Assembly (NCBI GenBank): GCA_963924565.1
Contig: OZ004608.1
Span: 4,836,001-4,900,000 of the forward strand
Source of the DNA: Ascidiella aspersa
Taxonomy: Eukaryota
Length of the DNA stretch: 64,000 nt
Direction of reading: 5' to 3'
The position numbers and the translations under genes are program-made. Below, piece after piece: positions 31,001 through 37,251 of the stretch. Below the pieces are notes generated by a model that was not told where the DNA came from, ran no database searches, and saw nothing but the letters and a program-made list of their open reading frames with translations. Position 1 is the stretch's first letter; each line of letters begins with the position of its first letter.

Positions 31001-34000
31001 ATTACCAAGAGTGAACGCCTAGCATGTCACCACGGAAAAGACCGCAACAAAGCCTACAACGATAAGCGACTACTAAAAAAGGTAGAATATAATTAACTCA
31101 TAAAACATGTAGACCTTAATTATTAGCAGTAAAATGTCTTTTTCAAACTAAAAACAAGTCACATTTTACACGAAATTTGTTATTAAATTTGACTAACTTT
31201 TGTAGGACCATACACACTTCTTGAAGCCAGTGTAAGGACACGTTTGTGCCAGAGCTTGTCTTGGAAACATACATAGTTAATTAAATGCACAGTGTTGTCA
31301 ATATTGTTTTAATTTAACATACTTTTACTTTCAGTATTTGGAGAATCCGAATATGAAGCGCAGATCATTTTCAAAAGGAACAATCAAAACTAACTGTGAG
31401 TCATCAATTGGTATCATGGAAGTCCTGAAGTTTCCAGAATTTGTGGTGAGAAGCCAGTTTGAGCATAATTTGTATTATACATACATATCTGTGGATATAT
31501 ATATGTGTGTGTGTGTTTATAAGTAACTGTTTGCATAAAAAACTGTTTTATATCATGGGAAGATTACCAAATTAAAACTTTTATTTTCTTGCATTAACCA
31601 TAGACCTTTATTTTACCAGGGCAGGCACATAACTATTTATTGGCAACTATTATTTAAAGAACATCAGGCATAAGATAAGGATTTCATAAATAAAATGTTC
31701 AAACAGGAAAATAAACCATTCCAAAAACTTTTTGATTTTGTTTTAGTTGCCTGTGATGACAGAATTCCGCAAAAAGTCGATGAGCAAAGACCTCCGGACT
31801 GCGATCAAGCGTGGCGATGAGATGACAACCGAATATGCTTGTCGTGTAATTTTTCCATCGGAGGACTCACACTCTGGCCACATTATTGGAGAAGTAAGAA
31901 TTACTTGTTTTTTACGCTACAAAGGCGTTCTGGTTTAAATCTTAGGTGTCTTTAAGTTGGCGGAAAACTTTTGTAGTGTGCAGCTCAGGGTTATTTTTCG
32001 ATAAATATTTACGTTAAATAATTATTGAAAAATACACTAGGATTCAATATTCTAGATTCTTAGATAAGAAACCTAATATTATAAAATCCCCTTGGATTCT
32101 ACTTTGAACATCCTTAATTGTTACTATTGCAAGCATTTTAGTAAAGCGCAAGGAAATTGCAAATATTTGCCTTGACTAATAGTATATCACAAAAATCAGC
32201 GAATCATGTTATAAATGTCGCCGACTCAAACATTCTGGAAGCCCCGCGATTTTAAAGTTTCAACAACCCTAACCTTAAAACCTTAACTTTATTTCTCCTA
32301 AAAAAAGTTTTATGATCTCAAACCCATCCATTTTTACAGCACTATATTTCCACGCAGGCTGCCGGACTGAACACCATTGACCATCGGCTAGTGGAGCGAA
32401 TCCACGAGCTAGTGTCCGATGGGATGTACAGCATCCCGGAGCTAAAGAGGAGCCTAGAGTCCTTCGTCAAGCACGAGCTCTTCAAGGAGCATCCTCAACC
32501 TAGTCCCAACAACCGGAGGTTCTTCCCGACCAAGCGCGACATCCGCAACCACAGCTACATGGCTTACGCCAAGCGCATCCTGTCCCAGATCGACCAGGAA
32601 TCGATGCACCTTGTTGTCGATGATTGGAAGAAGTTGTCGCAGCCTAACGACAACATCATCTTCCGTCCGCACGTCACTACCACCAATGATATCGGAGACC
32701 AGGTAGAAATCCATAAAAGTTTACGAAATTAGACGAACATCTTTTTTTAGATGTCATTTAAGCGTAAATCGACCAGTGCTTCCCAATCTCTTTTTTAGTC
32801 CGCGACCCACTTTTATTGCAAGTTATATTGTGCGACTCACAATAAGATAAGACCAAATTGGTTAGCAATAATTTGAAATGCAACTAATTGGAAAAAAGAT
32901 TAGCAGTTACATAAAACCTGTATCTTTACTACTGGCGGTTGGCCTACGTACTGAAATAGTTAATGCGACTAAAAACACATCTAATTGTTACGTTTTTGTT
33001 CATTGATGCCTAAATGTTACTTAATGCAAGTTAATGGTAATGCAATAATTTCCCGATCTAATAGAAAACTGTAACATCTAGAATGCTTCGCGACCCACTG
33101 GTTGGGAAGGCTGATTTGGATCTCTTTCCTAAAGATTTTTAGGCGTTATTCTGACGATTTTTGGTCTTATTACGACACTTTTTTATTTGTTGTGCACTAG
33201 CTTTTACCAGAGTGTAGAAAAATGATCGACTTGGCAATATTGCCACATTTACCGTTTAAATCACGACGTCGACGCTACAACGATTGGGGTATGGGATTTT
33301 TAATAATTTTATTTGTTTATTACGGCATAAAAAACACCAAATGTAACTGCATACAAACACAGGCACAGCGCAAGAAATTACGATAACATTAGGGCGTGAC
33401 GTATACTATTGATTACTTTTTGGCTTTGAGATTCACATATAGTGATAAAACAACACAGCAAAGAAAACACCTTGCATTAGGTTTGAATTCATCTCAAAGT
33501 TATGTTGACCTAAGTAAAAATCCCTTTTAATTTGAAAGGAAATCCCCTTTTTGGAAAAACTATATCATTTTATCGTAGTAAATATTGTTTAAGATATAGA
33601 CATATTTGGGAAAAGCAAAAAAAAAATATCCACTGCTATTACCAGTGAACTAATGTATAGGTCTTTCTCTAGGTGTAACAGTGAACTATAGGAATAATAG
33701 TTCGAAGAATTACCTTATTTAAAGTTATCAGACTTTCAAGGCAAAAATTGATTTAATGGCAAATTGAAGTTAAAAAAAAGTGAAGGTTGTAACTTTAAAA
33801 CTTTAAACCTGAAATAACGGGATAAACAAACTGTTCTCACAGGCTGTTACATTGTGGCATATTGTACAATCCAATACTAAAACAACTGTTGTTTTTGCCA
33901 ACGAGTCGTGGAACAAACGCTTTGCTATCATTCCGACTGGTTTTGTCTTTCCACGCGCTTCTAAAAGTTTATTGATTTTGCGACGCACCAAGCAATTGGA

Positions 34001-37000
34001 ATTTTATTTATTTAATTTTGTCAGAAAAAAGCACAAAATGTAAATCATACTCGAAAACGCAGCGCAAGAAATTAAGATAACCTTTAGGTGTGTGTTTTGT
34101 ACAGGTCGCCATTATCTTATAAAATACATTTCAATACACATTTGTATAATAATAAGCAGTTACAAATCACCTTAAACAGATGACGATACATGTTCGTATC
34201 GAAACGTCTTTATAAAGATGATACCGACGAGCATTTCGGATTCGACATTTATTATTAACCACAGGTTTTATTGTTTTTTGCCAACAGGTTGTGGAACAAA
34301 CGCTGCTCTTCGCTCACCAGTTTTCCTGGCAGCGTAAACTCCTCCAGCGCTACGGACAAACCGTTTCTCTTCTCGACGCCAGCGGAAAGTACTCTGGCTC
34401 TGAGTTCGTACTCCCATTATTCTTCCTCACCGTAAAATCCAACATTGGCTACCAGCTGGTGGGGAGCTTTATAACACAGAATAAAGAGGCTCCCGATATT
34501 GAAGAAGCCCTCAAGGTTTTCCAGCAGTGGTCCACCGAATGGAATCCAACCTTCCTTATGAGCGCAAGAAGTCAAGAGGAAATTCTCAAAATCGAAAGGC
34601 TTTTTCCTGGTAAGACATTTCTGGTGTTATGTTTATAGATCAGCGGTTCTAAATTTCGTTTGTATTGGTTTTTGAATCTACTGTTTATTCTGCACGTTAA
34701 TGGGGGTCACGCGGCTTAGATATTAGCATAAGGTTCGCCTTGAACTAAAATTACTTTTACCAATCAGAACTTCGCCCGGAAAATTCCGGCACGGCGTCTG
34801 CGAATTTCCGGGCATTTTGCAATAATTCAATGAATTAGATAACTTTTATTTATCTTGGCTGATGGCCGTATTTGTCTTAATCAAAAACTGAAAACAAGTG
34901 GCACTGTTGACGAATTGTATTTGATGTTGACCAGCTTTCACACAACCGTGCTTTATCAGGTCAGAATTAGAGAACGGTAAAAAAAAAAAAGTAAAGGCGC
35001 AAGCACATAGAATAAAGAGCGAAAAGCTAGACACAAGCACGCCCCACAAGCACACCTGGGCGAACTATCTAAAAACCACACTTTTAGCAAAAAATATTCC
35101 AAAAATATTAATATTCAGTCGTATTAACATCTAATTGTGGAGATTTTCATTTTTACGATCTAAACTACACGGCATACTAGGTTTCCAAGGCTATAAGGCC
35201 CTGGAAAAATTCGGCCATAAATGTTTTTAAGTTTAAATTTTTGTTATGCTGATAGTGATACCGATCCAGTACCAGTACAGTTTTTGCTGAAAAACAAATG
35301 ACTGAGTCGAGTAAATATGTGCCTTGTGTGTGAGTAGATAAATAAATCGTTTCACTTATGCCGTCGAATTAGGCCCTTCTCTAGTAAACAGCCTTAGGCC
35401 TACAGTACCCTTAATCCGGACCTGATCATGATAATGTTAATTTACAGACTGCCGAGCTCTCCTGTGCGAGTTTCAGGGCGTCGCCGACGCTCAAGGCAAC
35501 ATCGACATGAACGATATGAGCATCGTTAAGGTGGAAACCTTCAAGTTCTCAGCCGTGGAACCGTTTCCCCGTTACAAGGCCGACAAACCGGACAAGCGTA
35601 CTCTGAAGCGAATCGACGAAACTCTGAACAAAATCCGCGACGTTACGATGAAGATTAAAACCAACACGGAACTCCAAGAGGTGAAAGTGAAGAAAGACCG
35701 ATATATCGGTTTACCGATAATATCGGCCAAAATTTTGCTTCTACCGATATATCGGTATCGGTAAATTTGAGACGATACTTTTGCTGATTTTTTTTTATGA
35801 AAATAATTAAATATAGCTTTTACTGAAAAAGAAACAATTTTTTATTTTTGGCACAAAAAAATTTGTTCAACATCATGCAATTTTAAAATAAGGGTTAAAT
35901 AAATGTAGAAAAGCTAGATAAACTGAAATCTCTTTGGATTTTAATTTTTAATAATTGAATTTATTACAATATGCTAGGTGTATAAAAAATCGATATCGGT
36001 ATCGGGTATAGGTTGGCAAAAACATAAAAAAATCGGTTATCGGTATCAGTCTGAAAAAGTAATATCGATCTCTAGGTGGAAGTCCAGCTCAACCGACTCC
36101 TGGAGAAGCTACCGGAGGTTCCGGAGGACACAAAGAAGCCTGATCTCGGCAAGAGGAAAGCGGCGATAACAAACGGCGAAGAAATGGATCCGAAGCGTTT
36201 AAAGACCTCCGCTCCCGTGACCCTTGATTTCAGTAACTACTCCATGCCTGGAGGACACCAACAGGAGGTCCACATCCACTCGCATCCCTTTGAAGATGCA
36301 GGAGGACCCCACCAGGAAGTCCAGATCCCCGCGCATCAGTTCGGAGCGGGCGGGCAGGAGGAAAGTTTACAGATCCAAGACCCGATCGAAATCACTCCGC
36401 ACGTCTCAATCTTCGAGACTTACAACATCTCTTTGAACGAGACTCTGCTGAAAAACGGTCCGCACAATCTTTCCTTACTCCAGCTTAAATCCCTCGAACC
36501 AACGATGAGCGAAGACGAAACCGCGCTGCTCGTTTCGCATGACGCTTCCTTCAAAGTCGGCTGGCTCTACGACGAGATAATCAACAGCTACATGTGGTCT
36601 TTGAGCATTAACCACGAGCATATCATCTACGCTTCATCCACCGTAGCTCAAATCATGGAGCGACGCGGTTCTCTGAAACGCCTTTGGCAGAACGTGTCCT
36701 TAGAAAACAAACACTACATATTTATCCCTTGGAACCCTTCAGGAAGCCACTGGGTCCTATTGGTAGTGCATCTAAAGCGTAAGTGTCTCTTATACCTGGA
36801 TCCGCACCAGATGGTGGACCTCGACGCGAACTCAAACGTCCAAGCAGCCAAGCACTTTGTCGATTTCGCCGTCTTCGCAAAGTTCAAGTTCCGCTTGCGC
36901 TTTGTCGAGAGCCCGGTGCGCTCGCTGCAGCCGGACATGGAGAGCTGTGGCGTGTACATCTGCATGTACGCAAAGTGGCTGGCTTCTGGCGATTCGCTGG

Positions 37001-37251
37001 TCCAAGCGCCCGACAGCAACGGTGAAGAAAACGGCGCCTACAGGCAAAACATTTTGGACGAAATTGCCGGCGACTGTTTGAAGGAGATCCTGTCGAACCG
37101 CGAGGTTTGTAAAGTATGCGACGACAACGCCAAAGCAGACTGGATCCAATGTACCAGGTGCCAGCAGTGGCTGCATATTGAGTGCGTGGGTTTGACCACA
37201 GAACAGGCGCAAATGGTCAAGTATTTTGTCTGTCCACTGATCATCCATTGA
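28014..37251 (+). CDS. CaRF-like / Mutator-transposase-derived protein with AT-hooks, Ulp1 (C48) peptidase and PHD finger (~955 aa)
   Basis: Exons 28014-28319, 29145-29238, 30948-31081, 31335-31445, 31747-31893, 32358-32702, 34288-34609, 35448-35680, 36076-37251, phase-consistent. KRRGRPP AT-hook; CaRF-like IHELVSDG..LESFVKHELF..NRRFFPTKRDIRNH; MULE-like LLFAHQ.WQRKLLQRYG..SLLDA..LPLFFLTVKSN; Ulp1 WLYDEIIN/HWVLLVV/YLDP/QPDMESCG; PHD CKVC..WIQCTRCQQWLHIECVGL..FVC. Confidence 0.88.
28564..28908. repeat. Foldback element: ~130-bp inverted arms with CCCTAACC motifs, bounded by 26-bp direct repeats
   Basis: GGCGCTCTTTCAC...GGGTTAGGGTGCGGGTTAGCGTTTGG..GGGTCAAGT mirrored by ACTTGACCC..CCAAACGCTAACCCGCGCCCTAACC...GTGAAAGAGCGCC; AAGGCACTRAAATGCAATCKGGCCTT at both ends in the same orientation. 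Confidence 0.8.
30293..30851. mobile_element. hAT (Buster/Charlie-like) MITE
   Basis: CAGGGGGGTTCTAAACC/GGTTAAGAACCGCTG; TSD GATTATAG/GATTAAAG; internal ATTACCCA repeats. Confidence 0.8.
35688..36074. mobile_element. MITE (CCGATA/TATCGG-repeat family) occupying essentially the whole last intron of the MULE-derived gene
   Basis: Degenerate inverted ends TGAAGAAAGACCGATAT / ATATCGATCTCTA, subterminal CCGATA/TATCGG arrays at both ends, flanked by 8-bp direct repeats GGTGAAAG (35680-35687) and GGTGGAAG (36075-36082). Confidence 0.8.

Follow-up and report, generated by a model that had tools for sequence, protein, structure and literature searches.

In a 64-kb window of the genome of the tunicate Ascidiella aspersa (assembly GCA_963924565.1, contig OZ004608.1, positions 4,836,001–4,900,000, + strand; coordinates given below without a contig are positions in this window, that is, in the whole stretch of 64,000 nucleotides analysed), we examined a 387-bp miniature inverted-repeat transposable element (MITE) of the hAT type that lies within a gene derived from a Mutator-like element (MULE) and encoding an Ulp1 protease domain and a PHD finger. 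The MITE inserted into a coding exon and is now likely to be removed as an intron (35681–36075), and purifying selection has continued to act on the gene after its arrival. The non-autonomous element entered a single coding exon of the gene at the target GGTGGAAG, and its insertion duplicated those 8 bp. The combination of a target that starts with GGT and an element that ends in ...CTA then created G/GT at the left border and TAG/G at the right border (here and below, a slash in a splice-site or junction sequence marks the boundary between exon and intron, or the joined exons). Splicing would take out the whole element (387 bp) together with the 7 nt of duplication that precede it and the 1 nt that follows it, restoring the pre-insertion frame exactly (...LQE/VEVQL...). 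The ends of the element have since decayed, leaving it no longer mobilisable.

The host gene is single-copy and multi-exon, and open segments on the + strand between approximately 28014 and 37251 encode its three parts: an N-terminal part resembling CaRF/ALS2CR8, an exon that matches the ZSWIM1-3 RNaseH-like (MULE transposase-derived) fold, and a last exon comprising a Peptidase_C48 (Ulp1) domain and a PHD finger. The two exons that flank the element, termed exons E and F, are both unique in the genome at the DNA level. Exon E (35448–35680, +), delimited from the reading frame, follows the acceptor ...tttacag, is entered in phase 1 and left in phase 0, and ends in ...ELQE; the frame is kept across the junction with the preceding exon D (donor CTG/GTAAGA at 34609/34610, acceptor tttacag/AC at 35447/35448, the AC being 35448–35449). 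Exon F (36076–37251, +), the last coding exon, starts with GTG GAA GTC and contains 391 codons plus a stop; it encodes, in order, a conserved helix motif, a linker, the Peptidase_C48 (Ulp1) domain (PF02902, 2.8e-10) and the PHD finger (PF00628, 1.4e-7). Its closest named homologues in a word-index protein search are from the ascidians Clavelina lepadiformis and Ciona intestinalis, at approximately 35–41% identity (maximum 41%).

The element itself (35688–36074; 387 bp, no strand assigned) belongs to the older of two subfamilies (subfamily A) and contains no open reading frame. Read along the + strand, ...GAA CTC CAA GAG ends at 35680 and is followed by GTGAAAG (35681–35687), 387 bp of AT-rich DNA, ...ATCGATCTCTAG ending at 36075, and then GTG GAA GTC CAG. 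The left target-site duplication, GGTGAAAG (35680–35687, +; 8 bp), provides the last exon base with its first G, and the dinucleotide of the predicted donor with its GT. The right copy, GGTGGAAG (36075–36082, +), begins with the G that completes the AG of the predicted acceptor, and the remainder of it encodes Val-Glu-(Val). A repeated 8-mer with at most one mismatch is expected by chance at two fixed positions with a probability of 3.8e-4. Within the exonic copy the mismatched codon reads GAA (Glu), which is the state conserved in paralogues and homologues, and it is thus the intronic copy that has changed, from G to A, as a preliminary description of this sequence had held. We read no adaptation into that change, since drift alone would be expected to alter one of the 8 nt at the divergence observed for this element (see below).

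Both inverted ends of the element are degenerate. The left terminal inverted repeat (35688–35704, +) has three mismatches to the 17-mer TAGAGATNGACCGATAT that marks the terminus of the family, all in its first 7 nt (TGAAGAA, as against TAGAGAT in the family), and the right one (36061–36074, +) lacks 4 bp that are present in the family end ...GATATCGGTCGATCTCTA; its last A is also the A of the predicted acceptor AG. Inside the termini are a left subterminal array of palindromic CCGATA/TATCGG repeats (35697–35768, no strand assigned), which is conserved across copies and probably represents transposase-binding sites, and a right subterminal array of ATCGGTATCG repeats (35985–36047, no strand assigned).

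Repeats and paralogues were searched for in the window's own assembly (308.6 Mb). With the element as query, the genome yielded 846 first-look candidates, 40 of which were scored and proved to be 72–80% identical to the window copy, mostly over query positions 4–383 or 1–387, and the copy number of the family is in the hundreds; the terminal 17-mer alone occurs exactly 460 times, as compared with no occurrence of its reversed control. We set the ends of the family by aligning 21 full-length copies together with 40 bp of flanking DNA (between 21 and 31 other copies were used overall). The ends are abrupt, of the form TAGAGAT(A/C)GACCGATAT ... ATATCGGTCGATCTCTA, with a terminal inverted repeat of 17–18 bp, and they coincide with 35688 and 36074 in the window copy. 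Target duplications of 8 bp with no more than one mismatch flank 25 of 30 other full copies. Their pattern is nTnnnnAn, with T at position 2 and A at position 7 in 21 of the 25 each, and with G at position 2 in none (0/25); the window target GGTGGAAG fits this pattern at position 7 only. The size of approximately 390 bp, the lack of an open reading frame, the subterminal CCGATA/TATCGG arrays and the TAG.G terminus together identify the family as hAT-type MITEs, and its ends agree with the hAT terminal repeat type (T/C)A(G/A)NG.

These results bear out most of the preliminary description, which had been made from the sequence of the window alone. Its coordinates were all correct when the sequence was re-read; the element it delimited is a real repeat with the ends it had assigned, with inverted repeats and 8-bp duplications across the family, and with the degenerate termini it had noted. 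The composition it gave for the intron, with 7 nt of one duplication, a hAT-type MITE and 1 nt of the other, stands as well. No second family copy was accepted within the window: a terminus-like match at 33655–33671, with three mismatches to the terminus motif, was rejected for want of a supporting element alignment.

The predicted intron (35681–36075, +) is a GT...AG intron of 395 nt in phase 0, drawn from the continuity of the frame and from uninterrupted paralogues. Its donor GT comes wholly from the duplication and its acceptor AG is made of the final A of the element and the first G of the duplication, sources that the earlier description had also named. The donor, GAG/GTGAAA, is good at positions −2, −1 and +1 to +4. 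The acceptor, TCTCTAG/G at 36075, is the sole nearby acceptor that keeps the frame, with the upstream AGs at 36049 and 36059 both shifting it, and a CTGAA motif, read from the sequence 21 nt before the AG, could plausibly serve as the branch site. The intron RNA folds with a z-score of −2.98 relative to shuffled sequences, a value typical of MITEs from which no inference on splicing is drawn.

Support for an insertion into coding sequence comes from two paralogues that lie in tandem, approximately 10 kb apart, on the minus strand of contig C1: L033 (G000:C1:28283504-28287145) and L034 (G000:C1:28293959-28297600). From residue 1–2 onward they are 53–54% identical to exon F at the amino-acid level, and each reads across the site in a single uninterrupted open frame, ...ALIEAELELNKVLEKL in L033 and ...SLIEVELELKKVLEKI in L034, where the window gene reads ...TELQE/VEVQLNRLLEKL. 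The codons at the site are ATT GAG GCT GAA CTT in L033 (protein ...NRALIEAELELNKVLEKL) and ATT GAA GTT GAG CTT in L034 (protein ...NRSLIEVELELKKVLEKI); in the window, once 35681–36075 is taken out, they are CAA GAG GTG GAA GTC (protein ...NTELQE/VEVQLNRLLEKL). Relative to both paralogues the window gene has neither gained nor lost a codon there, which agrees with the claim that precise removal would restore the ancestral sequence without a scar. The helix motif that opens exon F is present in tunicate homologues too, where it is continuous with the residues upstream of it. The uninterrupted paralogues and this continuity together indicate that the site was ordinary coding sequence before the insertion, and the predicted intron is lineage-specific, judging by the read-through in the two tandem genes. 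Searches with the junction region at the DNA or protein level gave no paralogues besides these two, which were found via the protease part of the gene. Both display a MULE-like, Ulp1 and PHD architecture, with long intact frames of 437–456 and 223–249 amino acids.

Several points weigh against splicing at this junction. The donor is mismatched to the consensus at +5 and +6 and is therefore a moderate match only, and the pyrimidine tract of the acceptor (TCTCT) is short and weak. The genes that serve as the empty site are paralogues rather than orthologues. Among 1.84 billion representative proteins the exon F product found no match from its own species (the best match was 45% identical, starting from residue ~100), the exon E product returned zero candidates, and neither protein library yielded an own-species protein for either exon, the two having been searched one by one. 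Lastly, a second possible donor, GTGAAG (35687–35692, +), lies 6 nt downstream of the first and in frame with it, which makes the exact junction uncertain.

This second donor is built from the last G of the duplication and the mutated end of the element (TAGAG having become TGAAG), and its use, either alone or beside the exact junction, would place the boundary at 35686/35687 (AAA/GTGAAG) and add Val-Lys to the protein. Its match to the intronic consensus is about equal to that of the upstream site, and introners that add codons are documented (bioRxiv 10.1101/2022.06.06.494994). The upstream site, however, is preceded by a G at −1, a base that tends to be important where +5 is something other than G, and the paralogues possess no extra residues at this position; we regard splicing at the downstream donor as distinctly unlikely. 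If it is counted together with the exact junction, removal of the element by splicing is likely or even very likely. The sequence shows the insertion with its exact boundaries and target duplication, the lack of the intron in the paralogues and the intact, conserved exon downstream; splicing as such, and the use of exactly the sites at 35680/35681 and 36075/36076, are what we infer indirectly from these features.

The insertion is old. The family comprises two subfamilies, a younger one with a mean pairwise distance of 13.6% and an older one with 20% that includes the window copy. The window copy lies at p = 0.127 (Kimura two-parameter distance 0.139) from a consensus built from 15 older-subfamily members, with approximately six indel events in 387 bp; since a few terminal columns were misaligned in this comparison, we used a divergence of 11–13%. 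None of the genome copies scored is more than 80% identical to it. The earlier suggestion that this is a young intron is thus contradicted by the divergence of the element that forms it.

Over the same period, exon F has remained open and conserved. In a substitution-only simulation that counted stops, the probability that its 391 codons would stay free of them was 0.010 at d = 0.10 and 0.004 at d = 0.12 (the simulation was also run over the codons of both exons), and the indel density of the MITE, scaled to 1176 bp, predicts approximately 18 indels, so that survival of the frame by chance becomes much more improbable again. A comparison of 15 homologues gave 48 near-invariant positions, of which exon F keeps 47, the catalytic His, Asp and Cys of the C48 domain and the cysteines of the PHD finger among them; the binomial probability of such retention is 2e-5 to 4e-3 if 25–15% of codons are replaced. 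Further upstream, exons C and D have also stayed intact and resemble the paralogues. That exon F is open and conserved behind an old insertion implies continued selection on the gene after the element arrived, and splicing is the best explanation for this.

The age of the insertion and the state of the flanking exons bear on a second explanation, in which the gene is dead or dying, or the sequenced individual carries the insertion as a deleterious allele, and the GT...AG arrangement is a coincidence. Since GGT opens about 1% of random targets, a few chance cases are to be expected among hundreds of copies, and two others were indeed found. Against this, the insertion has had time to diverge by 11–13%, to lose the integrity of its ends and to acquire a mismatch in its duplication, and the 391 codons on one side and 77 on the other are nevertheless open, with 47 of 48 near-invariant residues kept, a combination that is incompatible with neutral decay. 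We accordingly hold a dead gene to be highly improbable.

Selection on exon F and on exons C and D does not prove that they share one mRNA, and a fission or truncation of the gene must also be considered. If the element is not removed, the frame meets a stop 28 codons inside it; the upstream protein would then end in 28 element-encoded residues and the Ulp1-PHD protein would be expressed on its own, driven by a promoter within or close to the MITE, with each half independently under selection. The first in-frame ATG of exon F, at codon 37, would provide a start Met, and many homologues are short, consisting of Ulp1 only or of Ulp1 and PHD. Against such a fission, a canonical GT...AG pair lies exactly where removal restores the spacing and phase of the paralogues, the conserved helix motif (exon F residues 1–13) lies upstream of Met 37, and several out-of-frame ATGs in the element would serve as upstream starts; no sign of a promoter emerged, although none was looked for. 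On balance, fission appears unlikely, and removal of the MITE as an intron is the reading that we retain.

We also considered whether the family as a whole generates introns, as had been proposed. This was assessed on a sample of copies and not as a genome-wide intersection with annotated introns. An open frame crosses the junction in none of 30 other full copies (the shorter side never exceeds 40 codons, as compared with 82/389 in the window copy). A GGT target was found for just two of the copies with exact termini, in each case within AT-rich DNA of non-coding appearance. The dinucleotide logic of the proposal, namely that any GGT target would gain a GT...AG pair from this element, is correct, but its extension to an intron-generating family in this lineage is not supported, given the 0/30 coding junctions, the two GGT targets and the preference for T at position 2 of the target (21/25). 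We read the window locus as a sporadic, accidental gain of an intron by an ordinary hAT MITE, and not the product of a specialised introner family. A much broader view would have the very abundant hAT MITEs of this sea squirt act as a recurrent and ongoing source of GT-AG introns whenever a ...CTA end meets a G/GT or AG/GT target, would regard the decay of the ends and the +4 G-to-A change as selected domestication (by immobilisation and donor improvement, respectively), and would make this locus one visible instance of introner activity spread diffusely over several families in an animal; we consider it improbable.

Introners, transposon families that make spliceosomal introns, have been described in Micromonas, Aureococcus, dinoflagellates and others (bioRxiv 10.1101/2022.06.06.494994, PMC12130899; reviewed in PMC11282704), and a 2025 survey validated them in the tunicate Styela clava (PMC12130899). 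The co-option of splice sites from the target duplication is well described (PMC11282704), and a 2022 survey reported families, in Florenciella, in which the duplication or the site of insertion supplies all or part of both splice sites (bioRxiv 10.1101/2022.06.06.494994). The window locus resembles these in that a non-autonomous DNA transposon with terminal inverted repeats sits, with its duplication, exactly between two exons, in that the duplication contributes the splice dinucleotides, and in that removal is predicted to leave the mRNA unchanged. It differs from them in that only one copy of hundreds is seen as an intron, in that the element brings no splice site of its own save the terminal A, and in that the nTnnnnAn preference of the family disfavours the GGT target on which the gain of an intron depends. 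The appendicularian Fritillaria borealis, another tunicate, has non-canonical introns derived from MITEs (summarised in PMC11282704, PMC13326754); there, too, a MITE with inverted repeats and with duplications at the exon/intron borders became an intron, whereas those introns are mostly AG-AC and AG-AT and depend on an altered spliceosome, and the one described here is a canonical GT...AG intron that calls for no special machinery.

As a transposon the element has nothing unusual about it, sharing with other animal MITEs of the hAT superfamily its 8-bp duplication, TAG.G start, nTnnnnAn target pattern, subterminal repeats, length of ~390 bp and lack of an open reading frame. The event itself is of the same kind as one-off insertions into exons that are rescued by splice signals which happen to lie at or close to the point of insertion, from which it differs in being unusually clean: the ends are exact, the duplication is intact, the restoration leaves no scar, and paralogues in the same genome lack the intron. 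The mechanism is not new, since introns made by transposons with duplication-derived splice sites have already been described, including in a tunicate. Animal cases in which an identifiable transposon insertion constitutes a whole intron are, however, still few, and this locus displays every step of the model in which the duplication supplies the splice sites: the ends, the duplication, the restoration, and intron-less paralogues that act as an internal empty-site control. It suggests that an exon can tolerate an ordinary hAT MITE lacking splice signals of its own if the target sequence happens to be favourable, a point that bears on the frequency of sporadic intron gain outside specialised introner families.

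With regard to the source of transposase for the MITE family, a copy of the family terminus, TAGAGATCGACCGATAT, is located at G000:C3:1818172 (+), 225 bp from a match to PF05699 (Dimer_Tnp_hAT) at C3:1818413-1818553 (−), which lies inside an open frame of 338 amino acids. The locus (C3:1818172-1818553) may be a candidate autonomous hAT partner of the family, the link between the two being a coincidence of coordinates only. A 3.7-kb interval on C1 between two family termini was rejected as an autonomous element, as it has no transposase open frame.

Some further observations concern the remainder of the host gene. Exon D (34291–34608) encodes only ~106 residues of the MULE/ZSWIM1-3 RNaseH-like fold and is common to the window gene and its two paralogues; the homologues from Ciona and Clavelina combine CaRF-like, Ulp1 and PHD parts without it. 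The two paralogues share with the window gene an intron located after ...LIPG/...LFPG (here the slash separates two forms of the same motif) and lack both the intron between exons C and D and the one between exons E and F. The former (32703–34288; CAG/GTAGAA ... CCAACAG/GT) is replaced in both paralogues by one continuous frame, ...NIVFRPREAADQKLLFVHQF... Because both introns are missing there, either two gains in the window gene or two losses in the paralogues have to be assumed.

The intron between exons C and D contains an unrelated and very abundant MITE (approximately 32770–33110; more than 1000 first-look candidates in the genome). We rejected this intron as a second one made by a transposon, as the internal MITE starts approximately 66–72 nt from the donor and stops short of the acceptor. 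The same intron holds one copy of a 30-nt direct repeat (33892–33921 and 34275–34304, 90% identity; TTTTTGCCAAC.. and GTGGAACAAACGCT), by which the acceptor and the start of exon D are duplicated inside it, and which may be the trace of a partial duplication in the history of this intron.

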